Below are positions 3,034 through 21,205 of a stretch of 21,205 nucleotides of DNA, one piece after another. How positions within the stretch are numbered: position 1 is the first letter of the stretch; every line of letters starts with the position of its first letter. The notes beneath the pieces were generated by a model. It searched no databases. It saw nothing but the letters and a program-made list of their open reading frames with translations, and was not told where the DNA came from. The position numbers and the translations under genes were made by a program. Origin of the DNA: Ginkgo biloba (taxonomy: Eukaryota; Plantae; Ginkgophyta); NCBI GenBank assembly GCA_024626585.2, contig JANKJI020000002.1, positions 100,755,748 to 100,776,952 on the forward strand. The letters are read 5' to 3'.

Positions 3034-3275
3034 TCATTTTGGCTTGGTATAGAAGCGAACTGCAACAACCAAGCCCAGAAAAGCCAATGGAACCGCAAAT
3101 TGCAAAACTTTGATCATAATTTCAGGAATTTTGTCAGAATTGTTAGGTGCTTGCTTAAATATTGGCTTTGTGGAAAAAGACGAGGGATCTATATCTCCAA
3201 TGTAATATTCTTCCATTGTTTCTCTGGCACTATTACTGTGTCCAGCACTTTCAAACTCCTCTGTTGCATCTTTCC
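3034..3275 (-). CDS. CB5: Cytochrome b5, terminal coding exon (second heme-ligand His, linker, C-terminal transmembrane anchor)
   Basis: The acceptor ...ttcctattcctgcgcag| (AG at 3277-3276) is followed by (G)KDATEEFESAGHSNSARETMEEYYIGDIDPSSFSTKPIFKQAPNNSDKIPEIMIKVLQFAVPLAFLGLVVAVRFYTKPK*, with the TGA at 3036-3034. The G-x-D-A-T and GHS motifs, hydrophobic tail and RFY luminal motif are typical of plant Cb5. The phase-1 join with the upstream exon gives GGG (Gly). Confidence 0.96.
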
Positions 3276-3485
3276 CTGCGCAGGAATAGGAAGATGCACA
3301 TGATCAATAGCACCAGAAACAAGCAAGTTTGTTCTTTCTACTAAAAATGTTTACTTGATCAAGAAAGATAAAAACTTTGCTATAATATGGTAATCCTTGG
3401 TGTTTCTACATAAAAAAACCACATTGAACAAGAATGTTAAAAGGAAACAATCTTCAAAATATTTTGATTGAGAAAGTCACCATAC
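3276..3485 (-). other. 210-nt GT-AG intron of cytochrome b5
   Basis: GTATGG donor at 3485 and polypyrimidine+CAG acceptor at 3276; T-rich on the minus strand. Confidence 0.93.
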
Positions 3486-3552: not shown

Positions 3553-4514
3553 CTATTGAGAGAAGTGCATCACTTTAGATCTTGCCAAAAGAAAGCAATT
3601 CTTAATGAATATTAGATATTGCTAACATTCTTGCTTGAATAAGAAATAATTAACTGGTCGTATAAGAAACCAAATGCCTATTAAATGTCATAGTAGTAGG
3701 CAATGACATCTAAAGAGGCTCACAATTCCATTCTAAAAATCTTATTTGCAAATTTGCAAGAAACAAAAGTCTCAAGCAATAAAAAATTTAAAAAGCAATT
3801 AGACTGTTTCTCAGGTGTAAGGTTGTCCTAGTGTGGTATCACTAGGGAGTTTAATTCACACATATTTAAATTGATAATCCAAAAGATAAGGGTGCTCCTG
3901 AACGTCTTCTTTAGCAGCTGTCAATTTCAGCAATCTCTAAAGTTCTTGTGATAGTGGGTCCTTTCACAAAGCAGAAAAGTTCAATGCAAGTTAACTGACA
4001 GAAAAACTGAAGAGTTGGCAAACCACGGTGCAAAAGGAACAATTGTGAATTTCACAAATTTGCAGTCAATGGGTGAAATTCATACTGGCTAGGTCAACCT
4101 GGTTGAGAAGAATGAAAACAGGGATCAGAAATCACCCAGCCATTTTTCAGAAGGAAGCAACAAAGAAAGAACCACCATAACCAACCTGACTAAATTTTGG
4201 CTTGCACAGGAATTTTTAAACTTGCAAGCACATTTTGAGCTATTTTGAAGCCCCCGTGGGTTGTTCAGGGCACTTTGGAGCTGTGACAGTGAGCTGAAAT
4301 AATTTTAGGGCACAAGCACAATTTTGAGTGATTTTGTGGTGCCCTATGAACCTGATCCTTAATTCTAAGAATGGCTGTGCTTCAGATAATAGGCCTGTAA
4401 ATGTAAAATTTATTCATTTGATGACAAAGTGATTCTTACAACCATAAGTATCATGTTCATGTCTGTATTCGTATTCAAATTCAACAAGCAAAAAGTTCAC
4501 TAGAAAGTTTGCCA

Positions 4515-4532
4515 ATATATATATATATATAT
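4515..4532. repeat. (AT)9 microsatellite
   Basis: Directly visible. Confidence 0.95.
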
Positions 4533-4867
4533 AAAATGTTTGAAAATTTGTCAAAGACTCAAATGTTGAACAACATTCAAGTTTTCAAGGATACAAAAGA
4601 AGATGTGAAAATTTGGACATCAAAATGAGCTAGAGCTGCATACTAACTAAAATAATTTCCNNNNNNNNNNNNNNNNNNNNNNNNNNNNNNNNNNNNNNNN
4701 NNNNNNNNNNNNNNNNNNNNNNNNNNNNNNNNGAATATAGTGAAGTAAAATCACTAGAGCACCACTGATACATGAACACTGCCTACATTACCAATTCCCT
4801 CATTATTAGCATCCACTAGTGAATCAGAAGAAACATCAGATGGATCCTTGGGCACATTTTGAGTAGA

Positions 4868-5380
4868 CTATTGCAGCTTGCCATAGACATAAACCAGATC
4901 TGCCAATTTATGCAGCAGTAATTTGTATCTATTCTTTGANNNNNNNNNNNNNNNNNNNNNNNNNNNNNNNNNNNNNNNNNNNNNNNNNNNNNNNNNNNNN
5001 NNNNNNNNNNNNNNNNNNNNNAGTGCAACTCGAGTGCTTATGCACAACATATTTCTTGTCATTCACCCAAACGAGGAAAAACATCTCAACCTCTGTATCC
5101 ACTCTAACACCAAATGCTTTAATGTTAGAGATCTGGATAGTTCCAGTAAAGTCAGCCAATGTAGTAGAACCAACCATCAGGTCCAATAGAATAGGGTCCA
5201 TTTAGTTATACGTACCCCATTTAGTTCTTGCCAATTATTCAGTCTTATCCATCATGAATTTTGTTGTACAATCTTACGTTGCCACTCACACAACCTGGAC
5301 AGTCCTTCAAGGAGGCAGTTGCAGGTGTTTATAAGATTACCAGTCAGGTGCCTTTATTCACGTTCAGAACAGCGTGTATG
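4868..5380 (-). mobile_element. hAT-family transposase remnant (C-terminal dimerisation domain)
   Basis: SKNRYKLLLHKLADLVYVYGKLQ* (4939-4868) resembles the hAT consensus SKKRNRL..KL.DLVYV.YNL. ALELH (5037-5023), preceded by GE* and KKY, resembles WW..YG..APELQ. The 82-N gap between them is about the 27 codons expected for the LS...SSS.CERNWS segment. Extension to 5380 is weak. Confidence 0.65.
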
Positions 5381-5382
5381 TG

Positions 5383-6511
5383 TGACGAATCCCAACTTAG
5401 AGGTTCAGAGAAACCAAACAGAAACATTTAAGGCTGATATATTTCAGATAAACACCACAACACAGCCGATCTAGGATAAAACACAATGGCTCTGCCCCGA
5501 CTAAATTTCTACTATGATCTTCACTAAATTTCCAATATCTATAAAACTTGAAGGACAGTAATTATAAAAGAACACAATCACGATTAATAGTCGGATCCAG
5601 GATTAGCAAACCCAGACACTAATAGAGCCTAAACTTTATTGAATATTCTCAGAAAATTCTGAGCTAAGATCAATTCTGAAGTAGAAAACACTACTAAACA
5701 CAGCGAACCACTACTATCAATTTCAGAACTGACATATTCAGAAACACCACTAAACTAGGGCTGAATGAAGAGCAGCTCTAACAAATAAAGTCAGTACAAA
5801 ATCTGAGTCAGTACATCAAGTACAGCAACCCGTCCTAAGTCTTAATCATCACAGAAAATATGCAGTTAGCACAGCAGATCTGATCTGACTTAATCGATAA
5901 TAGGGCAATATACTACTACAGTAGTGTGGCACAGAGATGAAACCAAAACAGTTACAGTGCTGCTGGAAAGAATGCATTCAATAAAGATAGTTTACATGTG
6001 AAGCACTGGAAACAGTGGGATTTCCTCCTTCAAATGGAAACAGTCCACTGTCTGCGCAAAAATGTGTGAAATCCCTACTGGAGTAGAGATACGGTGGCTT
6101 GAGAACAATGCTAAATTGTTGTGTTAAAACCAACAGAACAGTCGAACTGGAATTCAATGCTTTGAAATTGTAGTAAACTGCCACAGATTGGATAGACTTC
6201 AGTCAAGTTAGAAATGTAGTTCTTAGAGGGGACTAGACTCTCTTGATTCTTAGGGGAATCACTCCCAACAGACATGCAATTCCCAACACCAAAATAACTA
6301 ACTCNNNNNNNNNNNNNNNNNNNNNNNNNNNNNNNNNNNNNNNNNNNNNNNNNNNNNNNNNNNNNNNNNNNNNNNNNNNNNNNNNNNNNNNNNNNNNNNN
6401 NNNNCCAATTAATGGAAAAACAGATAGAATTTTGAGGCGGATTAATCACAAGAACACAAAAAGGGGTGAGAAAACAGAGCCAATGATGGGGACACATCAA
6501 TATCTGTATCA
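5383..6511 (-). mobile_element. Candidate 3' LTR (~1.1 kb) of the NRP-carrying element
   Basis: Imperfect terminal inverted repeats: TGACGAATCCC (5383-5393) and GGGACACATCA (6489-6499), 8/11 match with TG...CA ends. On minus, a PPT-like tract precedes TGATAC at 6511 (alternative start TGATGTG at 6499). The segment is non-coding and no partner LTR is visible. Confidence 0.45.
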
Positions 6512-6514
6512 ATA

Positions 6515-6522
6515 TTCCCTCT
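6515..6522 (-). promoter_or_regulatory. Polypurine-tract remnant
   Basis: Minus strand ...CTTTAGCGATAGAGGGAATAT|TGATAC resembles the Gypsy PPT-LTR junction. Confidence 0.45.
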
Positions 6523-6599
6523 ATCGCTAAAGATTAGCATTCTCTAGCATGAACCCAACTTGACATTGCTTTGGTATGCCTCAGATGATTTTGATTTCT

Positions 6600-7270
6600 C
6601 TTGTTAGGAAACAAAAATTGTNNNNNNNNNNNNNNNNNNNNNNNNNNNNNNNNNNNNNNNNNNNNNNNNNNNNNNNNNNNNNNAGCCATAACAGCCAAAA
6701 ACTCTCTCACTGAACCAGTTAAAAAATCTATCAATTTTTAATGGTTGTTTCTCACCTTTTTTCTCAGGATTCTTTGGTTTTGTTAGATCCATTCCTTCTT
6801 TTCAATGGGGAGCATTCCCTATTTCTATCATTGAAGCATCATTCACACACTTAAAACCCTTAGAAAGATTGTCTTCAAAATAAGGGTTTCGCCCAAACTC
6901 AAATGTACTTTTGTAGCCTGACTTTATGTTGACCAAGTCCTCAACATTCATAGACTTCAAATACTTGAATNNNNNNNNNNNNNNNNNNNNNNNNNNNNNN
7001 NNNNNNNNNNNNNNGATGGATTAAGAATGTTGTAAGCCAGAATTCTAGACTCGTTTCGATTACTTCATTGTGCCTTTGGTAAATTGGCCTCGTTTTCTCT
7101 ATGTACAATTGAACCAATTGTTCAATCTCAAGAACCTTGTCATTATCTTATTCATTTGCCTTGTCTAAGTCATCCCAAGCCTCTTAAAGGTGTTCCATGG
7201 ACATAAGAAGACAAGGGTCCATGACTTCAAGGTCCTCCACTTCATTTACATTTGCTCTCTTCATGTCCAT
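6600..7270 (-). pseudogene. NRP1/2-like: Intronless (retroposed) NAP1-related protein / SET-TAF-I histone chaperone pseudogene
   Basis: Manual translation gives MDMKRANVNEVEDLEVMDPCLLMSMEHL*EAWDDLDKANE*DNDKVLEIEQLVQLYIEKTRPIYQRHNEVIETSLEFWLTTFLIH[44 N]FKYLKSMNVEDLVNIKSGYKSTFEFGRNPYFEDNLSKGFKCVNDASMIEIGNAPH*KEGMDLTKPKNPEKKGEKQPLKIDRFFNWFSE. This is colinear with plant NRP motifs (KVLE.EQ.Y...R.P.Y..RN, FWLTAFL.HP, FKYL.SL.VED..D.KSGY, NPYFED, W.EG, SFF.WFS). Stops occur at 7186-7184, 7150-7148 and 6804-6802. No introns and no acidic tail are visible. Confidence 0.9.
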
Positions 7271-7470
7271 TTTCGTGCCGCCTCTGATATCAATAGCATA
7301 ATGCCCACGATTAAAACACATTGGCCATCACAACTAACACCTTGAGGATCATCCTTCTTTAAATCAATTGCTTATGATGACTCTGTATCTTCTTCCAGTC
7401 CTACAAGAGACTCTAGGATAGTTTGCTTTGTGGGGATTGACTCTGGCCACTAATGGTTACCGGCTGAGCT

Positions 7471-7896
7471 TCATTTCTGATTAGTTACAATAGTAAAACA
7501 GGTTGACAAGTTGAAAGAACCATTGGATATATGAACAGAATCCCATGGAACTGCATAGTAAGTAGCTTCTTTCTCCAGAATAATAATAGATAGATGATTA
7601 TTAACAATTGTATCGTTTACAAAATGTTTCTTGATTAGCATTTCCTCTTCACTTCGCTTCTTGTCCTTTAACCGAGAGCTCCAAGATGCATTGGCTAAGC
7701 TCACGGGTATCTTCTTCTCTTCGTCCATAGGATTCTGACTGAAGTATTGTTTGAGCTTATGAATTCTAGCCATAACTTCCATTCCATCTTTTATCTTGGC
7801 GAACTTAGGTATCCCAACCCTTGGCTTCTTAGGTGGAAGTAATTGAGGTCCAACATTACCTTTATGATTCTTATTCCTCTGCTGATTCATACTCAT
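7471..7896 (-). mobile_element. Internally deleted Ty3/Gypsy gag remnant
   Basis: PRVGIPKF...ARIHKLKQYFSQNPMDEEKKI resembles the Gypsy gag N-terminal motif (V..PKF.G...AW..KL..YF...PM.EE..I). KEATYYAVPWDSVHIS resembles a decayed K.LCF.C..PW.PGH.C knuckle. Confidence 0.6.
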
Positions 7897-8060
7897 CTTC
7901 TACGATAAATTAACAATGNNNNNNNNNNNNNNNNNNNNNNNNNNNNNNNNNNNNNNNNNNNNNNNNNNNNNNNNNNNNNNNNNNNNNNNNNNNNNNNNNN
8001 NNNNNNNNNNNNNNNNNNCGTCGTGGTTGACTTTAGATTTAAATGCTTCTTATTATCATC

Positions 8061-8378
8061 TTACTTTTTGTTGAAAAGTTCTTGATCCTTTTTTTTAAAT
8101 TGTGTAGATAATCGACACATCTGATTTATGAGAAAATACGGATATAAACTTCTTCTCACACACCACCTAATTGAAGTTGCAGTGTTTTTCATACTGGCAA
8201 TACCATTGTAGTTGGTGAGGTTATACAAAGTGTGAAAATAGATATATCGACAAGCAATGTGACACACTATGTTGTTCCACAACCTTTTAGACCTTTTTAC
8301 GTGCTCCTCAGGTTTGGTATCATTAGCATATTTTGGTAGGTTTGGACCGTTACTACCCCTAAACCTAGTAGTGAACAT
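8061..8378 (-). mobile_element. Second Ty3/Gypsy gag remnant (Tat/Ogre-like N-terminus)
   Basis: FRGSNGPNLPKYANDTKPEEHVKR resembles P..FK.P.IPKY.G..DP.EH of retrotransposon gag. Sequence is degenerate downstream. Confidence 0.5.
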
Positions 8379-10739
8379 AACTTATTCGAATATCATGCTT
8401 TAGCATGGAGTAAGAACCAACTTAACTCATAGCCTCATAATGTTAGGGAAAATTGTTTTCCCCGTGACACTTTCCATTCAAAATTTTATTCCTCCCATCG
8501 TCGTTCACACGCCTTGAGATGTTTAGCATCATTTTGAATCTCTAGAACAAACGTGGTGGAATCAAGTTGGTTAGTAGTGTACTTAACTTCTATGCTTTCA
8601 TCNNNNNNNNNNNNNNNNNNNNNNNNNNNNNNNNNNNNNNNNNNNNNNNNNNNNNNNNNNNNNNNNNNNNNNNNNNNNNNNNCAATTCTTTTTCATGTTG
8701 TAACATGTATGTTGATTGAGCTCATATGCCTTTCATAACCAGTTTACCATGAAGCATGCAAAGTCATCATCAGAATTTGCATCGCTTTCTACTTCTCCCT
8801 AATTGTTGGGCTCTAATGCTTCAGTTTATGACATGCAATGTAATGTCAATTTGAAGTATGAACTAGCCATGGATTTTGAGGATACTATAATAGTTGAAGC
8901 ATGATCCTCTACTTTCACATAAGCTAACTTGTCTATACCCATCAGTAGTGGTACAACCTCACCATCCTGCCACAAAGTGAACGTATGGGTCCACCAATCT
9001 TGTATAACTCTAGTCTTGTGCACCAATTCTCATCCAAACAATGAAAGATAGTATTAGCCCTTTGCTGACATCTTAAATATTGTGAAGTCTTATAAGACAA
9101 CCCTACTTCCGTGATTGGTACATTCTCAACTATTTCCAATGGTCAGTGTGTAGTAGGCAAGTGTCAAGGTTGGGCTTCTTATGGCCTTCCAAGTATTCTT
9201 ACGGATTACANNNNNNNNNNTCATTATAGATCCTTCATCTATGATAGCTTTATCGACAGTGCACCCCAATTATTGCATGGTTACGTAGGGATCTTGATCC
9301 AAGTTTAGGTAAGTTTGTCATACGGGCATTGTGTCTTTGTTTTAAATAATTTATTGATATGATGCACCTATTCCAAATCCCATAAGTGAAAATTGGTGGA
9401 TAATGGTATAATTAATTTTAAATCATTAACAAAATCTTTGAATACTTCCAANNNNNNNNNNNNNNNNNNNNNNNNNNNNNNNNNNNNNNNNNNNNNNNNN
9501 NNNNNNNNNNNNNNNNNNNNNNNNNNNNNNNNNNNNNNNNNNNNNNNNNNNNNNNNNNNNNNNNNNNNNNNNNNNNNNNNNNNNNNNNNNNNNNNNNNNN
9601 NNNNNNNNNNNNNNNNNNNNNNNNNNNNNNNNNNNNNNNNNNNNNNNNNNNNNNNNNNNNNNNNNNNNNNNNNNNNNNNNNNNNNNNNNNNNNNNNNNNN
9701 NNNNNNNNNNNNNNNNNNNNNNNNNNNNNNNNNNNNNNNNNNNNNNNNNNNNNNNNNNNNNNNNNNNNNNNNNNNNNNNNNNNNNNNNNNNNNNNNNNNN
9801 NNNTAGTTTACATTATAGTTATTATTATTGTTGCATTTATAATTGCCTTTGTTTCCTCGTCCTCAATATGGGTTATTTTGGCGTTTGTGAGGAATTGAAT
9901 AACACTCTTTCATGTCATGTGTATCTTTCTCGCAAATTAGACGCTAGAGTTTTCTAGTGGTATTATTTTGCTCCTCTTAGGTTGCCTGGTTACAACTAAT
10001 GTTGTTTTCCTTTGGTTTTTGCATGCGTTCTTGTGTTGGCTCTTGTTTTTGTAGTTTTAGTTTGGCAATTTCAATATGAAGTTTCTGAATATCGCTTTAG
10101 TTTTTGGGGTTGTCCAATTCATATTCCACTAAGTGTATGACACATAGTCAAGTGGGAAATCTTCTAGTTGCCAGTCTGGTTAGTGTAGGTTTCGGGTGTC
10201 CATACACGGTTGTTTGTCAAATGCCATCGCCAAATATCGTACTTATTTATAGCTCTCAATTGGATGATGTATTATTTTTTCTTGATATGGTGGCAACGAC
10301 CCATCTACGAAGTAATTCATCATTACAATTGGCACCATTGTGTTTGAGCCATCAAGTTTTGATGCTAAGAGTTTTAATCTTTTTTCATAATTTTGCATCG
10401 TTTCACCAAATCTTTGCTTGATCTCCTTGAACACTTTATTAATATTAACTATTATGGGATTGCACAAAAAGGTCTTGGACTACTGCCCATAAATGATGCC
10501 TCACAAACGAGAACCACAACAGGGCTTGATCTTCAAGGGTGGAAAAGAATCTTTGCTTTATTTCTTCTTCGGTTGTGATGTGATAGAGTGTGATGTTGTT
10601 AGGAAACAATGTCGAATGTTTAGATGAGTCATGGTTGCTTGCCATTGCATATTAAGTGATAGTGAAAAATTTGGTGGTACGTATATCGAGGTTGTTCCTT
10701 TATGGTGTCCACGTTTTTCACAATTGTTATGTCCTCTAT

Positions 10740-11230
10740 TACAATTTCTACCATTAAAGTTGCTGAGGTGATCTCCATTGAAATTTCCACCATTGTTGGA
10801 ACTTTTGTGTTGTAATTTTTGTTGTTATAATTTGCACCGTTATGAAAATTTCTTCTATTGTTGAAATTCTACCATAGTTAAAGTTTTTGCCACTGTTATT
10901 GAAGTTCCCACCATTATTATCTAAACTGTCGAGATTATCATAATTACCTCCATACAGATTGAAATTGCCGCTATTAGTATTGGGTTTCTTCTCATGGTTG
11001 TCGAAGGAGGTGCTAGTATTATAGGCTTGGAAATTATTGTTGTTGTTGAAGTTGAAATTACCACCATAATTATTGCCAAGGCTTTTTTGATGTTGTTGTT
11101 ACTTGCGAATCCATCGTTGTTAAAATTATTATTGTTGAAGTTGCCTCCATTTGTACTTAGAATGTTATTAATGCTTGGGTTTTCACTGTTGATTACATCA
11201 TTGTTGTTACTTGGTAGGTTTCTAAAATTT
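10740..11230 (-). repeat. Asn/Gly-rich imperfect coding repeat (GGNFNN units) upstream of gag
   Basis: Repeated GG(T/A/C)AATTTCAA(C/T)-like units. Stitched frames read TNGGNFNNNNFNNDGFASNNN / GNNYGGNFNFNNNNNF...NSGNFNLYGGNYDN...NNGGNFNNSGKNFNYG / NFNNRRNFHNGANYNN / SNNGGNFNGDHLSNFNGRN. Confidence 0.75.
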
Positions 11231-11693
11231 GTTATTATCATTGTTTGACTAGCTGAAACTAACGAGAGGGTTGAATAGCCCTCCAATTGCATTGTTGGAA
11301 CCGCCAAATATGTTGTTCTGATTGCTGGTGAAATTACCAAAAGTGTTGGTCTAGCTACTGCAACTGCTGCTTTGATTATTGGTGAAATTATTCTATCCTC
11401 CAAATAGGATGGCCTTGAATTCGAATGGGATGTTTTGGTTTTGCCCATTGCTTGTGTTAATCTATGGATTATTGAGTTTTAGTGAGTTTGTTCTAGCATT
11501 AGATTGATTTGGGTTGTTATTATTTACAAAGCTCATGTGGTAGGCTTTAAAGGTATTACCATTCTCTTGATGGTTCTGCTTTTGTTTATTGCTTCCTCCC
11601 ATTATCTAGTTAGGACAAAAGTTCTCTGTATGACCTCCTAGTGAGGCTTCTTGTTGGGGGCTTGGAAACTTGAAAGGTGGTAGTGTTGCCATA

Positions 11694-11711
11694 TTTTTTT
11701 TTTTTTTTTTT
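11694..11711. repeat. T18 homopolymer
   Basis: Directly visible. Confidence 0.95.
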
Positions 11712-12456
11712 CATGTATGCTATAGGGGGTTTGCAGTTGCTATGTCTCAATGAGCAAATGTTGTCTCGACGACTCTAATTCATTACAACTTAGACTGTTA
11801 GAAATATCTTCTACAAGTACGCTTGATAGCTACTTAGCCTGTATGGTGGTGAATGTCTTATTACTTAATGCAAGTTTCACCTCAAAGTCTAGGGGGTCTT
11901 CTCCTATTTCACGTTGAGATCAAGACTTTGCCATATTTTCTCTTCTTCTATCACTTATGACTATATCTCCTTCGTATTATTGCTCATGGCTATTCCGACT
12001 GGCATAGGAAGTGGTTCCTCAATAATCACATCCTTTTGGTAAAGGTGAGTGCTACTATAACTACTTGCTCTTCTATGAGGTGTCCTCCCCTATTTTCCCC
12101 AAAGCCTCGAGATCCTTATGTTTTCCCCCTTTAGGAGTTGTTATATGCTTCAATTGGTCGGTCATTTTACTCGATTATCTTCTTTTAGTTGCTTCTTGCT
12201 CCTTCGTCTAGCGAATATGTCTTCTTGTTGTGATCTCTTTCTTCAAATTCGTTTAACCTTATGGCAGCATCAGGAGACTCCCTATCTACGAGTGGGTTTA
12301 GTTAGAACCCATTGTTGTGTCTGTAGCCAAAGGTCATTTGTAATTCAGACATCAACTCACCTGGTTGACCTCACCTTAGTGGTTAGGACCCCTCTCATCA
12401 TCACTAGATCCATTATCCCCTTTGAATTTCAACGAGGTCTAGACATAAGAACCAAA

Positions 12457-14421
12457 TGTTGACTAATTATGGTCCCCTACAACAAGCCCACTATCAACAA
12501 CAGATTAGCATACATACATAAAGATTAAGGCATGCATTTATTACCAATAAGCATCATAGAATCATTGCACAAACATCAATAAATGAGAATTAGGGTACAA
12601 AAATCTCATTTATTACTTCATTAATGATAATACATTAGCACAAAAACCCTAGACAATGGCCTCTCACACCAAACCCTAGGATCTTGTACTAGGTTCTCAC
12701 ATCTAGACTCCACATTCTCTCTTATTTATATTTTTGCTCTTTTCATAAATGCAAATATCATGACTTTTTAGAATGAAATGGTGTAACCCTAACCCTAGGA
12801 CTCTTCATTTATTACAATGTCCATTCATTTATGGCCTCATTATATGTGCCTCATTAAGGCTAATAAATGCACCCTTATGGTCTTCAATAAACGCAACTTG
12901 AATTCAGTGTTATCTAGATGAAATTGAAGCTTCATCAATTTGTCAATGATAGGGCATTAACTGCATTGACTTTCTTTTTCCTAGATGACGTCAACAATCT
13001 TGCATTAAATGTGGGTTCTTGGGCTTCATAAATGCATTTTAGNNNNNNNNNNATCAGCCTATTTTTAATGTGCCTTTGTTGGTTGAGGTCATCCATTGTA
13101 CTTTTGGTTCATTATGCCAATGTCATGCACTGAATTTCCTACTCTACGACTACAATAAATGCACTCAATCTACCATAAATGTAACTTTCTTTCAAGCTGA
13201 CATCATATTTTTTAGGGCTATCATCATCATTTAATGTGCTGCCACATCATTGGTCACGTTGCCTTGTCATCTTTTAATGTGCTAACACGTCATTTGGCAT
13301 GCTACTACATCATCAAGCATGTTGCCACATCATCATGGCACTATTCATTGTCATATTTATGTCCTTTTGTCATTCCATTGTCATTAGCACATCATCTGTC
13401 ATTGTTTTTGCCATGTTGTCGATATGTCGCAATTATCTTGCTAACAATTATTAGTGCTCTCAAGAAATGATGCTTGGAAATTGCTTATCAAGCAAAACAT
13501 TCAGGCTAGTAATGCCATGGGTAAATCCTCTTGGAAAGAGTTGTCCTTATAGTCTTTGATTCTAACATGTGCAAGAGTCTAGGTTACATAGCTGCTATCT
13601 TTAAAAGTGTTTGACAAGCTTCGGATTGGAGAGGTGTAAATATCCTAAGCGGGTTAACAATAGCCAACCAATCCATTTGATGGTCTCCTCTAATAATGGA
13701 AGGTGACAAATGCCTTGGTGAGATCAAATGGTTCTGTGGCATTGAACCATTTGAGAGGAATCAAAACTCTCATGAACTTGTTTGATTCCAAAACTAGTTA
13801 GTGGAAGCCTTGGGAAGTACTCAAGACAAATTTCAATCTTAGCAACTAAGATAAAATAGCCCTAGACAAGATCATGTCAATGTTGTCTAATTACTTTGGG
13901 CTTAGAATGGTCTCCAATGACCCTCAAGCATGGTGGAAGTACTAGATATGGCATGGGTCCAAGGTCATGAGCAAAATCTCTACTTCTCATATCTACTCTC
14001 TTCTTGCACCTGAAGGTAATATCACTAACAAAATAAATGCCAAATGCATTATGCGAAGCTCTAACTGATTTGGAATCACATCAATAAACACCTAATTTAA
14101 TAGGATCAAATTGGTTGGGTGAGGAGAGATGCAAAGAGGCAAACTGGTGCTCAACAAGTGCAAAACCCTAAGTGAGAGAGAACCAACTCAATTCTTCATT
14201 TCATTAAAAAGAGCTCACTATTTATAAGTGAGTACAAAAGGGACTTTTCACTTTTACAAATGTGGGATATACCCTTTTAAGTGAAAAGTCAAAAGGTGCA
14301 AATACACTTTGATGAACTATTGAACTATTGACTTTAAGTTAAAAATAAAGTGAAACTATATTAAACTGAAAAGACAAGTAATGTACACTTTACATGATAG
14401 TTCATCAAATGGGGATTAACA
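12457..14421 (-). mobile_element. Candidate 5' LTR (possibly composite) of the gag-protease Gypsy element
   Basis: Termini are TGTTGA (12457) and TTAACA (14421). On minus the junction reads ...GTCAACA|TTTGGTTC (PBS position, degenerate). TATAAATA occurs on minus at 12730-12723 and 14226-14219, with AAACCCTA telo-box motifs near 12645, 12671 and 14163 and CCAC(A/G)TCA-like subrepeats at 13200-13350. Confidence 0.55.
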
Positions 14422-15202
14422 CACATGCATAAGTAACTCATCAATGGGCATACATTCATAATGAAATAACATTAATTGCTCATGCACAAATAACAGGGAG
14501 ACTCAATTCTAGGGTACAAAATCTTCATTAATGCTTATAAATGATAGTACAATGTCATTAATGCCACCTTAGCCTCTCACACTAAGATGTGCAGTAAACA
14601 CTATTGATTACATTAGGTTCTCACATTGAGATATGTATTTAATACTCAACTCTCACATGGTTTTCAAGGGAAATTCACTCTCCTATTTTTACTTTTCTCT
14701 CTTCATTAAACGACATGGCTTCCTAGATTAGGTCATAACCCTAGGATTCTCTCTCTTAATTAAATGCACCCTCTTTAGGACATTAAATGCAACCTAATAA
14801 TGAGGTTAAATATGCATTGTCCTTTTCTCCTTAAATATAGATCATTATGAGTAATTAATGCACATAAATTAATCCTAAGTCATCTTTGACCAAGTATGAC
14901 AACATCATAATGCTCCTTAATTAACGTTGACATCATAATTGTGACTTAAGTCAACTTAGCCTATGTTGATCAACATTGATTGTGTCATAATTGCAACTTA
15001 TTTAATGTTGACATCATAAATGTAGTTAAGTCGGCTTACACTGTGTTGACTAGCATTGACTGCATCATAAATGCACATAATTTAAGTCAATTTTGACATG
15101 TGTTGACCATAATTAATGCATCTCACTTTAAGTTCGTTCTAATCCTGTGACCATGACTTTGACTAAGTTTGACCAACAAATTATACACCATTAATTATTT
15201 TC
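14422..15202 (-). mobile_element. Truncated LTR of a related, diverged family
   Basis: Shares colinear blocks with 12510-12880: TGCACAAA, TAGGGTACAAAA, AATGATA(A/G)TACA, GCCTCTCACAC, TAGGTTCTCACAT, TAACCCTAGGA(C/T)TCT, TAAATGCACCCT. Confidence 0.65.
14921..15081. repeat. Imperfect ~81-bp tandem duplication within a GTTGAC/CATCATAA subrepeat array
   Basis: Units start ttaacgttgacatcataattgtg (14921) and ttaatgttgacatcataaatgta (15002), both continuing ttaagtc..ctta...tgttga...cattga..g..tcataa.tgca. Confidence 0.8.
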
Positions 15203-15599
15203 NNNNNNNNNNNNNNNNNNNNNNNNNNNNNNNNNNNNNNNNNNNNNNNNNNNNNNNNNNNNNNNNNNNNNNNNNNNNNNNNNNNNNNNNNNNNNNNNNN
15301 NNNNNNNNNNNNNNNNNNNNNNNNNNNNNNNNNNNNNNNNNNNNNNNNNNNNNNNNNNNNNNNNNNNNNNNNNNNNNNNNNNNNNNNNNNNNNNNNNNNN
15401 NNNNNNNNNNNNNNNNNNNNNNNNNNNTGTTGGGGTTGTGCCCTTTGTTTGATTTATTTTCATATTATCTCTGATTTTCTATACATTTATACTTTGTGCA
15501 TGTTTGGCACTATAATAGTGATTTCCAGGATTATATTGGTATGCATATGTCACCCTTTTGTTGTACTCTATGTAATTGAAGTGTAGTTTCCATTGAAGA

Positions 15600-17260
15600 G
15601 ACATTCCCCTTCTGGGAAATAGTGGAAATGGCTTCAACAAACCCAAAAATAGGTTTCCATGCAACTAGATGAGGAATTTTACACTAAGAAGGAGCACGAG
15701 ACATATTGACATGAAGCTCCAAACATAGGACCACCCTCATCAATCACCAAGCCAACAACAGTTTCACTTCTAGGAAACTGATCAATCCAAATTGAACAGG
15801 TGTGTCATTGATGGTGATGTTCTTTGGTCATCATAATATGTAGGTCCTCAGACTAAGCTTTCCTACTCATTAAGTATGGCGCATTCCATGGAAATGAGTG
15901 GTCTCTACAACCAAATTTGTGGATCATTCAGTTCTCCTTTCAATTTTCCACAGTCCAACACAAACTCAGACACCTTCAAAAGACATTCTCACCATTTCTT
16001 CAACTGCATTACAACGGAAGCAAAGGCCAACATCCATTCAAAACTTAAGATTTTAAGGATGACGAATTGTGTGCACACTCCTCGTGACAAGGGCAAAGGA
16101 CTTGATAAGATAACGTCATCATACAATCACTCGAATTACAAAAATATCTAAGATATACTACTGGCTGCTAAAGGCAGTTTCATGCTCAGTTATGCTAGTA
16201 ACAGAATCATATAAGTGGCATATAACACCGTATTGAGCACACGAGGAAGCACTAGTTCAACTATGCTTCAAAAACAAAGCATCTTAAGGAAGCATGGCAT
16301 GTAATGGACCTAAATAAGGGGTAAACATGTTAATAAGAAAAAAAAAAAAAAAAAGAAGTTAGTATGTTAATTAAAAGTCAGTTAGATGAAGGTTCATATA
16401 GTTAGCAATTAAAGAAGAGGTGCCTGTCCAAGAACCTTTTCTGTTGATCACCCTATATAAGCTATTTGTCCAAATTGTATTCATCATCATTCATATATCA
16501 ATTGATTACATTATTTGGTTATAACAAGTAATTCTAGAAGCTTTCAGGAGCCATCCATCAAGTTGATTCAAGCAGCATGTCAAATGTCAAAACAGGCATT
16601 AAAACTGCCAAGAGGGAGCAAGATTAGATAAATAAGAACAAGATAAAGCTGCCAAGGATGAGAAAAAGCAACAAAAGAGTGTCTGTGATCCCTCCTGGAC
16701 ACCCTCTTAGACAGATACACTTTGTCACAAGATACTCCCCCCAACACTGACCCAAACAGGCCCTCTTCTAGAAGATTTCACCAAAAAGGTATATGGGGAG
16801 AAAATGCAATGAAAATTTTCACCATACCCTTTGATCTTTGGGTTATGCATTTTGAAAATTATTTGCAGTTGTCAAAAACAGATCAAGCCAAGAACTCAAC
16901 TTGCAAGGTAAGGCTCAAACTTCGTACAACCACAAAATTAACCAGAGAAAGGACAACCATATTTTTAATGAAGATGAGGCATGTAATTTGTATCCAAGAT
17001 CACTTTGGTAAGGCAATCACCCAATTTTATTTCCACCCCATATAGGTCAAGGTTAGCTGTCCACATGGAAAATCTTAGGTCGTCTAGTATCATGTAGGCA
17101 AAACCATAACCCTCTGTCTAGTATTGAGTATTCTCAATATTGCAAAGGAAGAACAGTTTGTCATGGGTCTCAAGAATACCACCAGACACGTGGTAGAACA
17201 CCCCAACAGTAAGGCACCTTGGCACAAGCAATGGCCTTGGTAAAAAGTTATATCAGGATT
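15600..17260 (-). mobile_element. Internally deleted, decayed L1-type LINE
   Basis: ORF1-like motifs: FFLCNIEN...FSMWTANLD, WIQITCL (16996-16976) and VWVSVGGSIL*QSV. ORF2 C-terminal zinc finger: IKSFA...GLCFRCNAVEE../NVF*RC (~16120-15965). RNase H-like start WKPIFGFV......KGN (15659-15603). Domain order is correct but EN and RT are absent. Confidence 0.6.
16338..16354. repeat. A17 homopolymer
   Basis: Directly visible. Confidence 0.95.
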
Positions 17261-17444
17261 AAATGACTACACAACAGCCAACGAGTACAAGAAGTCCTGC
17301 ACAAGGCCAAAACAACAATTTCTCTTTTATTGAGTACAGTGGTTCAAGAAGGAAGAGGGGACATTTGAATTCAAATTCAGATTTAGAATCAAGGAGCAGC
17401 CAAAAGTCAAATTCCCTACATTTCAGCCAATGGGCAAAATAGGC

Positions 17445-17560
17445 ACATGAAAGAGACCATCCTTTTCTGCTTCCCGACTGAAGGAGACCACAAGAAAGAT
17501 TAATACATGAAAGAGAACATTTCTTTCTGCTTCTATACGGATGGACACCACAAGAAGATT
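17445..17560. repeat. Imperfect 60-bp tandem duplication
   Basis: acatgaaagaga(c/a)cat..(t)ttctgcttc...gga(g/c)accacaagaa starts at both 17445 and 17505. Confidence 0.85.
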
Positions 17561-19036
17561 GCCCATTAATGCTAGAGAACAGCATAACTGGTGACTGCTA
17601 CTAGATCAATTACAACCCAATGGACAAATATGTGGCAGTTGACCCCTCATTCACTGTGGGAACCCACAGTCATGTTGCATTGCTATGCACACTGTAAAGG
17701 ACAATGTATAGTACTTTCTGACACAGGTGAAGAACAAGACATAGTCTCATAGAATCTCACCATGCACTTGGGCCTTACACCAATAGAAGCAAGTCCCTTA
17801 TCATTGGCATCTGCCTTCAAAGAAGAGATAAGCAAGCATTATCTTTGATAATGGGCATTTCATGCACCACTCAATAACGCAATTATGCTGTGTCACTCCA
17901 GGGAATGGCTATTTACTCCATATTGGACAGGGAGGTCAGCAGTGTGACATTCCTGGCAAAGGGACAAGTCACCATTTGTGCAGTACAAGTTGAATCCTCC
18001 ACTGGGTTTTGCCAACCCAGCCCAGTGGAATCCTCAGCCACAGTGACACTAGACGATTGAAGATTGCAATGGACATCAACCAGATCTGCTCATTAAATCA
18101 GAACTAATGTGTATCTATTCTTTGAGTATATGCATGAGACCTTGCCTTAACTCTCAAATGGGCAAATGCTGTGACTCTAGTTCTTATGCACCATTAAATC
18201 CAACAGATTTCTTCCCCCCTTTGGCTGCATTTGAATCAAATGTCAGAACCTCTGGCCTGTGTGCCAAGAGCTGTGCCAGAAACTTCCTTTGGTCATCGGG
18301 TTCTGAATTCAGCTCTAGAATAAGCACAGACTAGCCTAAGTCATCAAAACAAACAAAACTTGGAACCAACCCATCACTGTTCTAGTCACTTTCATATATG
18401 CTTCCAACAATCCTACCAAACAGGCGAGATACTGACGTGAAACTCAATCTAGGTTTGCCTCGGTTATGTCCTGAAACCTGAAAAATAGCAAAATCTGCCC
18501 TTAAACCAGAAAATTTCACAATCCATACTATACCAAACTATAAACGATTCCAGCAGATAATACAATACTTAGAGTTCAGATTTACTGCACGGTAAGCACA
18601 TTACCACCTTACACTAAAGTTGAACAAATATGGATCCTTTCCTTTGTGGCAAATTATATAGTCATATGCCATGGTTTCTTGTTTATTCATGAAAAATCCA
18701 CGCATGCTTAGGCCTTTTGTCAGCTGAGCTTTATATTCATAGGGAATGGTTCCTCCCAAGGGGTTTGGATTCATAATATGCTTTGGGCCACATATTATTT
18801 TGCAACAGAGGAACTTATGGCATATGATCACTTTGCACTGACAGCTAGCTTTAAGTAACAAGAAAAAATCATTTTGTTTGAGGGTTAACTTACAGTAGGT
18901 GCTAGCATGTTCCTTACTGTTATCATCAGGTATATTGTGGAAGCACCAAAAACCTAAGCCGATAAGTCAAGTTTGCCTTTACAAAAATCGCTTAACAGAA
19001 TGCACAGAAAAAGCTGCAAACAGGCCGCTTCAAGAT

Positions 19037-19859
19037 NNNNNNNNNNNNNNNNNNNNNNNNNNNNNNNNNNNNNNNNNNNNNNNNNNNNNNNNNNNNNNNN
19101 NNNNNNNNNNNNNNNNNNNNNNNNNNNNNNNNNNNNNNNNNNNNNNNNNNNNNNNNNNNNNNNNNNNNNNNNNNNNNNNNNNNNNNNNNNNNNNNNNNNN
19201 NNNNNNNNNNNNNNNNNNNNNNNNNNNNNNNNNNNNNNNNNNNNNNNNNNNNNNNNNNNNNNNNNNNNNNNNNNNNNNNNNNNNNNNNNNNNNNNNNNNN
19301 NNNNNNNNNNNNNNNNNNNNNNNNNNNNNNNNNNNNNNNNNNNNNNNNNNNNNNNNNNNNNNNNNNNNNNNNNNNNNNNNNNNNNNNNNNNNNNNNNNNN
19401 NNNNNNNNNNNNNNNNNNNNNNNNNNNNNNNNNNNNNNNNNNNNNNNNNNNNNNNNNNNNNNNNNNNNNNNNNNNNNNNNNNNNNNNNNNNNNNNNNNNN
19501 NNNNNNNNNNNNNNNNNNNNNNNNNNNNNNNNNNNNNNNNNNNNNNNNNNNNNNNNNNNNNNNNNNNNNNNNNNNNNNNNNNNNNNNNNNNNNNNNNNNN
19601 NNNNNNNNNNNNNNNNNNNNNNNNNNNNNNNNNNNNNNNNNNNNNNNNNNNNNNNNNNNNNNNNNNNNNNNNNNNNNNNNNNNNNNNNNNNNNNNNNNNN
19701 NNNNNNNNNNNNNNNNNNNNNNNNNNNNNNNNNNNNNNNNNNNNNNNNNNNNNNNNNNNNNNNNNNNNNNNNNNNNNNNNNNNNNNNNNNNNNNNNNNNN
19801 NNNNNNNNNNNNNNNNNNNNNNNNNNNNNNNNNNNNNNNNNNNNNNNNNNNNNNNNNNN
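19037..19859. other. 823-nt assembly gap (largest of many N runs)
   Basis: N run. ORFs spanning it are artefacts. Confidence 0.99.
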
Positions 19860-19912
19860 TGTTATTGCAATAACAAAGTACTTGTATTATAAAAAATATA
19901 TTTTTTTTGCAT

Positions 19913-19928
19913 TATATATATATATATA
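19913..19928. repeat. (TA)8 microsatellite
   Basis: Directly visible. Confidence 0.9.
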
Positions 19929-20019
19929 TTATATTATAGGTATAATAATCTTGATTGATGTAGTTATGTTCTTAACAATTCAATTAATCGTGTGCTTCTA
20001 TTTACAAGAAAAGAAAGAT

Positions 20020-20067
20020 TATAATAAAATTATAAGCTTATGGTATAATAGAATGATAAGCTTATGG
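20020..20067. repeat. 24-bp tandem duplication (22/24 identical)
   Basis: tataataaaattataagcttatgg followed by tataatagaatgataagcttatgg. Confidence 0.9.
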
Positions 20068-21205
20068 CAAAAGTTTAAGCTTTGATGTCACTTCATTATT
20101 AGATGGATCAACTCAATTNNNNNNNNNNNNNNNNNNNNNNNNNNNAGAGTCTTAATCAATGGAGTTCGTAAACTATTCGAAGTTTTCTCAAATAATGCAA
20201 TATCAAAGTATATTTGGATTGCTTCATCATCAATATTTTTGAGTTCCATATCTTTTTTGTCTGGTTGATTTTGTAAGAAACTTATCCACGAATTAAATGA
20301 TAAGTTGATAACTTTGTTTACTTGTGAACCGAAATAATGTTGCTTAAATGATGTTGAGCCATTACTAGGAACTTCAATTATGTCTTTTGCCATTATTTGA
20401 TGAATGTAATTAGAATAAACTTGTAGTTCATTGACAAATTAGAATAAATGTGAACAAATGAATATTGAAGTAAAGTGTGCAATTCTTATTATTTTTTATT
20501 ACTTATATTTTTTTCTAAATATTTCTAATAATAAATTTATAATTCATATGAAAAGTGGCATGTAGTTTGTCTTAGTTAAAATTCTATAGCAAACTAAAAA
20601 ATAATATGCAAACGAATGTTAAAGTAACATATGTAGTTGCAATTATGTTCATTAGATAAATTTTTGCAGCTACCATAATCATTATAATGAAGACCAAAAT
20701 CATATGAAATAACTGACTATTTTAATACATAAAAGGAAACATAACAATCAATGAGAAATGATATGATTACAAAACGCACAACATAATTCAACAATTTGAA
20801 CTTAAATAAACTATAAATAAAATACATATTTTTTTAGATTTTGAGATACTATTTACAATATAGGTATTGATTTAACTATTTTCACCTATATCTATGAACA
20901 CTATTTTTTATATGAATGATACGTAGTCATAAAAACCCTTAAAATTACTATGCGCATGGTTCTAATCTAATGTNNNNNNNNNNNNNNNNNNNNNNCCACT
21001 TCGATCGTGTATGATATATCCTATAATGATGAAAAAGTTTAAGCATAAGTTAATTAGTGTTAATGTAATAAACTACTTTTACATATAAATTAATTTTATG
21101 ATGTTTAGTATTACTTGCCTCCTTATAAAAACAAAAATATTCAAGAAGCAACATGTCCAATGTAATGCTTTGTTCGTATTTTGTGATAATATTATTCTTA
21201 TCAAG

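Follow-up and report, generated by a model that had tools for sequence, protein, structure and literature searches.

Does a repeat in the Ginkgo biloba genome carry its own histone chaperone? The question is raised by 21,205 nucleotides (nt) of contig JANKJI020000002.1 (assembly GCA_024626585.2, positions 100,755,748 to 100,776,952)—hereafter the window, numbered from its first letter—in which a first-pass annotation had read positions 5383-7896, on the minus strand, as a Gypsy-type long terminal repeat (LTR) retrotransposon holding a complementary DNA (cDNA) of a NAP1-related histone chaperone, NRP, in place of its pol genes. Four observations carry our answer: what the NRP piece is and how far it reaches, that it lacks introns, that it stands in place of repeat sequence, and that its 5' junction recurs at other loci. 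The explanation that we favour, with modest confidence, is that 5380-7918 on the minus strand is one member, now decayed, of a dispersed mosaic repeat family without pol, a lineage of which acquired NRP sequence through template switching by a reverse transcriptase and was then copied, the cargo being inert.

Three collinear minus-strand pieces match Arabidopsis thaliana NRP2/NRP1 (PDB 6jqv, 5day) over residues 37-76, 91-135, and 148-179; among solved structures human SET is matched as well, and one piece gives a weak Pfam NAP match (PF00956; E 7e-4, below the curated cut-off). When the Ginkgo NRP Gb_36879 (P0053, 258 amino acids) is searched against the window by tblastn, residues 1-82 fall on 7270-7016 at 71% identity and residues 97-187 on 6969-6700 at 77%. 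The assembly gap between them, written as 6971-7014, is bridged by a window-identical contig of run X15 (6892-7130, 4 letters fewer), which sets its true length at about 40 nt; with a 40-nt gap the two NRP halves stand 42 nt apart, exactly the 14 residues (83-96) absent from the parent alignment, and in frame. The intronless minus-strand stretch of NRP/SET type (NAP family) seen at first pass is thereby borne out, whereas its proposed extent to ~6600 is too long: homology ends at 6700. There, reads of the parental messenger RNA (mRNA) depart from the window with EEELVVGMMQ, which is residues 188-197 of Gb_36879, and the copy therefore ends at codon 187.

The likeness to plant NRP1/NRP2—NAP1-related, SET/TAF-I type H2A/H2B chaperones (PF00956)—thus amounts to 71-77% identity to Gb_36879 over residues 1-187, and what the window holds is a pseudogene fragment. 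The Pfam NAP domain of Gb_36879 spans residues 70-217; the copy stops before the domain does, and is without its last ~30 residues, the acidic tail, the 3' untranslated region (UTR), and any poly(A). Three in-frame stops interrupt it (7186-7184, 7150-7148, and 6804-6802), the one at 6802 being private to the window copy and a Trp codon in every other contig and RNA read. As for indels, 9 nt are duplicated in tandem near 7106 and 3 nt are deleted. A divergence of 23-29% in amino acids and ~10-15% in nucleotides would correspond to roughly neutral drift. In poly(A) RNA (run X24), the reads that fall on 6700-7270 are 80-95% alike and none at the locus reaches 95%; these reads derive from the parental mRNA, not from the window locus. 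With an incomplete NAP domain, no acidic tail, three stops, and no trace in poly(A) RNA, the NRP cargo is inert, and the transposon's "own nucleosome chaperone" of the earlier interpretation is not supported.

The Amborella NRP2 gene is 7.9 kb long, with introns after about residues 43, 85, 100, 123, and 161. At least five of its intron sites fall within the copied part and the window has none of these introns; because the NRP piece runs uninterrupted across them, it is cDNA-derived. The comparison presumes that Ginkgo's own NRP gene shares the Amborella intron positions, as it probably does. The earlier view of a cDNA-derived NRP part, in sense orientation and inside a multicopy element, is in this respect upheld.

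The surrounding element belongs to a family of which the other members are known to us from gene annotation: at least 25 Ginkgo models with Gb_ names contain family sequence (among them Gb_20652, Gb_08025, Gb_39527, Gb_23004, and Gb_15212). Placed on the window, their common parts are a 5' module at 7896-7291 and a tail at 6616-6496, and at least eight cases have both (Gb_20652 twice, Gb_08025, Gb_39527, Gb_23004, Gb_15212, Gb_22282, and Gb_25407), with 40-230 residues of other sequence between the two in those eight. The contig depth of the modules reaches 10-40 times that of single-copy DNA in two DNA runs. Canonical copies read ..AIDPRG / IDYENPF.., then ~60+ residues, then .. / KGCFVV..EIKVIS..; the window reads ..AIDIRG / GTK-MDMKRANV.., the NRP piece, ..FSERV / FGCYG, 49 unread nt, and ..EIKII-GIPKQCQVGFMLENA... 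The unread part is the gap written as 6622-6683, bridged by another window-identical X15 contig (6584-6895, 13 letters fewer) at a true length of ~49 nt. Among contigs of run X1, 14 part from the window near 7297 and follow the canonical sequence, AIDLRGVNYD, and in two contigs 6600 is joined to 7297. Since canonical copies and contigs alike carry other sequence between module and tail, the NRP piece replaces family sequence—it took the place not of pol, as had been proposed, but of ~60+ codons of an already pol-less mosaic.

The family is a mosaic in other parts too. After the tail, canonical members continue with ..GNIDADINGHWNFNNKTMIRATVIKSWALVNYSPSL.., which matches Pfam ArgoMid (P0001, E 4.4e-7), and further domain fragments in the family models are Vps54_N, ABC1, AMP-binding, Aldedh, M16C_assoc, DUF608, AIR9, and WEMBL. 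Several of these fragments recur in the same order in multiple members, which marks them as the cargo of subfamilies rather than neighbouring genes. A wider reading of the middle and tail as Argonaute PAZ-L2 was dropped: the family profile matched nothing in the PDB, and one sequence matched only AGO10 residues 537-564 (E 0.75). The short ArgoMid piece is retained as Argonaute-like on the strength of its Pfam match. One practical consequence is that at least 25 annotated Ginkgo "genes" are chimeras on this repeat, for which domain-based annotation is misleading.

The junction of repeat and NRP is not confined to the window. The model Gb_17055 (P0009) runs unbroken through module, spacer, and ..AIDIRGNTE / MDKKRANVDEV.., a junction identical to that of the window; it is only 46-70% identical to the window and is therefore another locus. 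In Gb_24070 (P0004) the module is followed by TR / MDKKKANV.., with the same 5'UTR remnant. At NRP position 7 all three copies have Asn in place of the Lys of every genuine NRP examined, a derived change (K7N). The shared change and the recurring 5' arrangement fit one NRP capture that was copied later. While canonical copies number in the tens, only about three with NRP are observed.

The 5' module opens with a 141-codon open reading frame (ORF; 7471-7896) followed by a spacer of ~190 nt, and these stand as first described, as do AGAGGGAA (6522-6515) and the lack of a poly(A) tail; the labels "truncated gag" and "Gypsy" are not supported. A phmmer search with the ORF gave 51 matches, the top ones Ginkgo gene models and the distant ones JmjC proteins of 1200-1600 residues with JmjN, JmjC, and C2H2 fingers, of the REF6/ELF6 type; the closest protein relatives are all Ginkgo biloba Gb_ models, and gag is not among the 51. 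The ORF has no Pfam match, and a word-index protein search with its 141 amino acids, limited by length range and word matching, returned none. ORF residues 62-119 are 41% identical to residues 466-523 of P0035, directly after the JmjC domain, and the Ginkgo JmjC model Gb_15928 matches window positions 7713-7462 at 49% over 84 amino acids. In an angiosperm gene (L002 exon map) the same stretch starts where an exon starts and extends across the following exon boundary, and the window holds no intron there; the JmjC piece looks spliced too. From residue 62 on, then, the ORF is of JmjN/JmjC/C2H2 REF6/ELF6 type, and the "gag-NRP" arrangement of the first-pass annotation recurs at the 5' side in at least two other loci (Gb_17055, Gb_24070), with a "gag" part that is mostly JmjC. 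What gag likeness there is lies in the first 60 residues: residues 25-52 show a weak alignment with a motif, PKIDMRKF-DGKDPVTWILQMEQFF, that precedes the capsid domain in an authentic chromovirus gag (residues 138-163, on L004), with a BLASTP E of 0.027 and, for the family profile in hhalign, an E of 0.0083 at 5% probability. These non-significant scores are suggestive of a gag-derived start; look-alikes in the ESM Atlas for ORF residues 1-62 were uninformative.

Related JmjC sequence also occurs on two contigs of JGI sample 3300072920. A long intron-free retrocopy of a JmjC gene of REF6/ELF6 type makes up a 3.5-kb unit common to L003:1201-3760 and L004:2717-6272 (94% identical), and it adjoins a complete Ty3/gypsy chromovirus with 330-bp LTRs, the primer binding site (PBS) TGGTATCAGAGC, and the polypurine tract (PPT) AAGGGGAGGGGAA. 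A 338-bp block stands outside each chromovirus LTR, in a puzzling order. We set these contigs aside as evidence for the class of the Ginkgo element: their JmjC piece, ~75% identical over 190 nt, is another family. A kinesin-like start for the JGI JmjC ORF was likewise dropped, as it has no Pfam support.

At the other end of the element, the first-pass annotation had placed a PPT at 6522-6515 and, from 6511, an LTR. Both fall within family-conserved codons: AGAGGGAA and the proposed LTR start lie in DRGNIDTDID of the conserved tail, and homology to family proteins (DRGNIDADI) continues through 6522-6496. The window passes straight from ..NIDTDID to VSPSL.. at 6494, whereas canonical copies (P0001, P0002, P0007, and P0010) have 25 Argonaute-like residues between the two; in 19-21 contigs that agree with the window from 6494 downwards, the letters before the match read ..KMMGFNLSPSL, the end of the Argonaute-like piece. 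Because canonical copies carry the missing residues and the contigs below 6494 are preceded by that end, we have moderate confidence that 6494 is the point of a ~75-nt deletion and not the edge of an LTR. The segment from there to 5380 is repeated and non-coding; its outer edge, at 5377-5383, is sharp and borders on single-copy DNA. Positions 5377-6062 are matched by a paralogous contig, and the model Gb_25559 (P0008) consists of the 5' module followed by a match to 6266-6183, linking this 3' segment to the family. Reading it as a solo LTR was rejected: the pentamers flanking it differ, and its inner edge is the deletion point.

The account that would join these observations is as follows. The family is made up of sense-oriented, intron-free pieces of host genes, with a short, possibly gag-derived start and a REF6/ELF6-type JmjC fragment; canonical copies also have an Argonaute-Mid-like piece, and subfamilies Vps54, ABC1, or AMP-binding fragments. 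In one lineage a stretch of spliced NRP mRNA ~580 nt long (codons 1-187 of Gb_36879, with 10 nt of 5'UTR before them) replaced ~60+ internal codons, with both junctions clean—most likely through two template switches by reverse transcriptase, from element RNA to NRP mRNA and back to element RNA, among co-packaged RNAs. The chimera would then have been copied at least twice. We infer template switching from the sense orientation of the piece, its possession of the 5' end with UTR, its internal 3' break, the missing poly(A), the replacement of element sequence, and the intron-free mosaic nature of the whole family.

A number of results weigh against this account, several of them through the class of the carrier. 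Neither self-BLASTN nor a repeat search of the window finds an LTR partner for 5380-6494, although a 5' LTR could hide in the assembly gap at 7919-8018, and the summed depth of the segment, 2-12 times single copy, is lower than that of the internal modules. A PBS search (initiator methionine tRNA, up to two mismatches) returned one match, at 7292-7281, which is chance level (1.15 expected). No PPT was found beside a terminal repeat. No pol domain (protease, reverse transcriptase, RNase H, or integrase) appears in the ORFs scanned over 5000-9200 or in family members, and no target site duplication (TSD) was found, the pentamers beside 6494 and 5380 being different and the 5' end of the element lying outside the read sequence. 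With no LTR pair, PBS, terminal PPT, TSD, or pol found, the class is unproven, and that the carrier is an LTR-type retroelement can be put forward only as a tentative assignment. The copies themselves add further reservations: other Ginkgo copies are known as protein gene models alone, possibly artificially spliced, look-ups of the exact ORF, P0009, P0004, and a Cryptomeria NRP protein having returned no record; the three NRP-bearing copies do not group in a largely unresolved maximum-likelihood tree built on 72 columns of the 5' module; and at the 3' junction of NRP and repeat the unread gap begins after 16 nt. As for the single PBS-like match, TGATATCAGAGG, it sits on the minus strand with two mismatches exactly at the repeat-NRP junction; canonical copies are without it, and it was discarded as a chance match.

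Of the other explanations, the one that survives best is that a break in a genomic repeat copy was end-joined with NRP cDNA as filler, ~190+ nt of repeat being lost, and that the product spread by segmental duplication or ordinary mobilisation. We consider this unlikely, though it would account for a piece that replaces sequence, that is cleanly bounded and 3'-truncated, with neither poly(A) nor TSD, and that is found in only ~3 copies against tens of canonical ones. What it leaves aside is that the rest of the family is also a sense-oriented, intron-free mosaic, which argues for a recurrent RNA-level process in the life cycle of the element; sense orientation is not required of a filler, yet all pieces have it. 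An improbable alternative is that a gene-capturing DNA transposon (Helitron, Pack-MULE, or Pack-CACTA) took up existing processed pseudogenes, NRP included, at the DNA level. A serial mosaic in one orientation (JmjC, ArgoMid, Vps54_N, ABC1, AMP-binding, Aldedh) is typical of Helitron or Pack-type cargo, and no LTR features were found; however, capture at the DNA level usually retains introns, whereas the pieces are intron-free across at least five sites in NRP and at least one in JmjC, and there are neither terminal inverted repeats nor Helitron ends at the 5377-5383 edge, nor any inverted repeats in the window.

Very little credence is due to an ordinary NRP processed pseudogene, made by a long interspersed element (LINE) and landed in the repeat by chance. 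The NRP copy is intronless and dead, as an L1/LINE product would be; but it is 5'-complete rather than 5'-truncated, is cut at codon 187, and has no 3'UTR, poly(A), or TSD, the reverse of what target-primed reverse transcription leaves. Repeat sequence was moreover replaced, not interrupted, the junction recurs in other copies, and the departure of the parental reads at 6700 excludes the rest of the mRNA and an A-tract from the 49 unread nt at 6622-6683—in agreement with the first-pass annotation, which had also decided against an L1 retrocopy. Least credible of all is an element encoding a working NRP-type H2A/H2B chaperone that aids integration or escape from silencing, since the frame kept over 187 codons, the two indels (each a multiple of three when the gap is given its true length), and the gene models Gb_17055 and Gb_24070 that read through their NRP parts are set against three stops, an end at residue 187 within the NAP domain (70-217) with no acidic tail, a divergence that fits neutral drift, no poly(A) RNA read at least 95% alike, and ~3 copies only.

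Template switching within a retroelement-type repeat, the explanation we prefer, makes the locus a well-resolved instance of gene-fragment capture as already known, rather than a transposon with a working chaperone. The maize element Bs1 is the closest parallel that we can offer, reportedly treated by Jin and Bennetzen in 1994 and by Elrouby and Bureau in 2001 and 2010. Template-switch capture by retroelement reverse transcriptase and Bs1 itself have been described (PMC13317346): like the Ginkgo family, Bs1 is pol-less, has a hybrid frame in which a gag-like start (only weakly gag-like in Ginkgo) is joined to intron-free sense fragments of unrelated host genes, and occurs in low to moderate copy number. 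Bs1 has a defined set of LTRs, PBS, and PPT, in contrast, while none can be demonstrated in the Ginkgo family; the donors differ (H+-ATPase, glucanase, and xylanase in Bs1; JmjC demethylase, Argonaute, NRP, and others in Ginkgo), and in the Ginkgo copy a later cargo took over part of an earlier one. LTR-mediated retroposition with chimeric retrocopies is on record in rice and sorghum (PMC3726574) and in metazoans (PMC5131818); those copies, too, are template-switched mRNA, intronless, without poly(A), and flanked by element sequence, but usually the LTR itself adjoins them, whereas the flanks here are internal mosaic and the LTRs are unidentified. In gymnosperms, capture by transposable elements is reported to be massive—on average ~400,000 fragments per genome, with ~14% of carrier elements holding two or more (PMC13477047). 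The window shares with that material host exon fragments in transposable elements, ancient and numerous, and belongs with its multi-fragment minority; the survey is statistical, whereas this is a single case dissected down to junctions, donor, and sister copies.

That is where its value lies: host-exon shuffling by retroelement-type repeats in a gymnosperm giga-genome can be followed here with donor, breakpoints, replaced segment, and sister copies identified, and with one cargo overwriting an earlier one. A far more speculative thought, which we regard as very doubtful, is that a retroelement lineage took up chromatin and silencing genes (H3K27-demethylase-type JmjC, Argonaute, and NRP) repeatedly, beyond what random capture would give. 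Were it true, the donor genes might be targeted by transcripts or small RNAs from the cargo, serving as decoys or triggers of trans-silencing and so blunting host silencing; the co-occurrence of JmjC, Argonaute, and NRP is curious, but it could be chance among many captured genes. The features on which the argument draws are collected in Table 1.

Table 1. Features of the repeat copy and its NRP cargo, in window coordinates.
Feature	Positions	Strand	Remarks
Repeated non-coding 3' segment (proposed as "LTR")	5380-6494	-	Unbridged gap 6305-6404 inside
Putative deletion breakpoint, ~75 nt relative to canonical copies	6494-6495	-	Would remove the Argonaute-Mid-like piece (NGHWNFNNKTMI..WALVNY)
Tail module (..EIKVISGIPEQCQAGFMLENAGIFDDRGNIDADI..)	6495-6699	-	Gap 6622-6683 inside; tblastn of P0001, P0002, P0007, P0010, P0015, P0018, and P0025 onto 6616-6496
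Proposed "PPT", AGAGGGAA	6515-6522	-	Codons for (D)RGN; adjoins no repeat boundary
NRP cDNA fragment	6700-7270	-	Codons 1-187 of 258; assembly gap 6971-7014 inside
Probable NRP 5'UTR remnant, CGGCACGAAA	7271-7280	-	Between repeat and NRP ATG; residues GTK, NTE, and TR precede Met in the window, Gb_17055, and Gb_24070
Family-conserved spacer ending ..AIDIRG	7281-7452	-	P0009, P0007, P0010, and P0013 align down to 7291; canonical copies depart here
REF6/ELF6-type JmjC demethylase gene fragment	7453-7713	-	From just after the JmjC domain
141-codon ORF, 5' module of the repeat family	7471-7896	-	ORF listing; phmmer
First 62 ORF codons, weakly like a Ty3/gypsy gag N-terminal motif (PK.F..DG....I...EQFF)	7711-7896	-	
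Assembly gap	7919-8018	.	22 nt upstream of the ORF ATG; hides the element's 5' continuation; P0017 and P0018 align up to 7917

More than 10 sequencing studies contain the window stretch nearly letter for letter. To the left of ~5400 contig depth stands at the single-copy level, 77 for run X1 and 8.7 for run X2, and by summed contig depth the sequence from 5402 to ~9100 is repeated throughout. The window as written has 14 runs of N, and no contig among those listed bridges the two at 6305-6404 and 7919-8018. One X2 contig (number 19) that matches 8019-8602 extends leftward by 839 letters, which are unplaced and do not match 7180-7918; the 100 N written for 7919-8018 probably underestimate the true length. 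Run X15, which is small and labelled "RNA?", has window-identical contigs over 6584-7130, 8039-8311, and 9110-9400 and none over the single-copy flank at 4400-5400; these could reflect low-level transcription of the repeat or low-coverage DNA.

Further along the window, two decayed minus-strand stretches (10246-10651 and 10757-11478), preceded by an Asn-rich low-complexity ORF, read as gag-like retrotransposon sequence (..EEEIKQRFFSTLEDQALLWF.., ..QRFGETMQNYEKR..); this reading was made by eye alone, with no significant Pfam match, and Pfam scans of the further ORFs tried in 8000-20500 gave nothing usable. A direct repeat of ~100 nt (76-82% identity), at 4837-4939 and 18023-18125 and thus 13.2 kb apart, brackets the whole repeat-rich block. 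Within single-copy DNA, a gene of cytochrome b5 type has its C-terminal exon at 3037-3303, on the minus strand, with a Pfam Cyt-b5 match at E 1.7e-7 and, after it, a membrane anchor.

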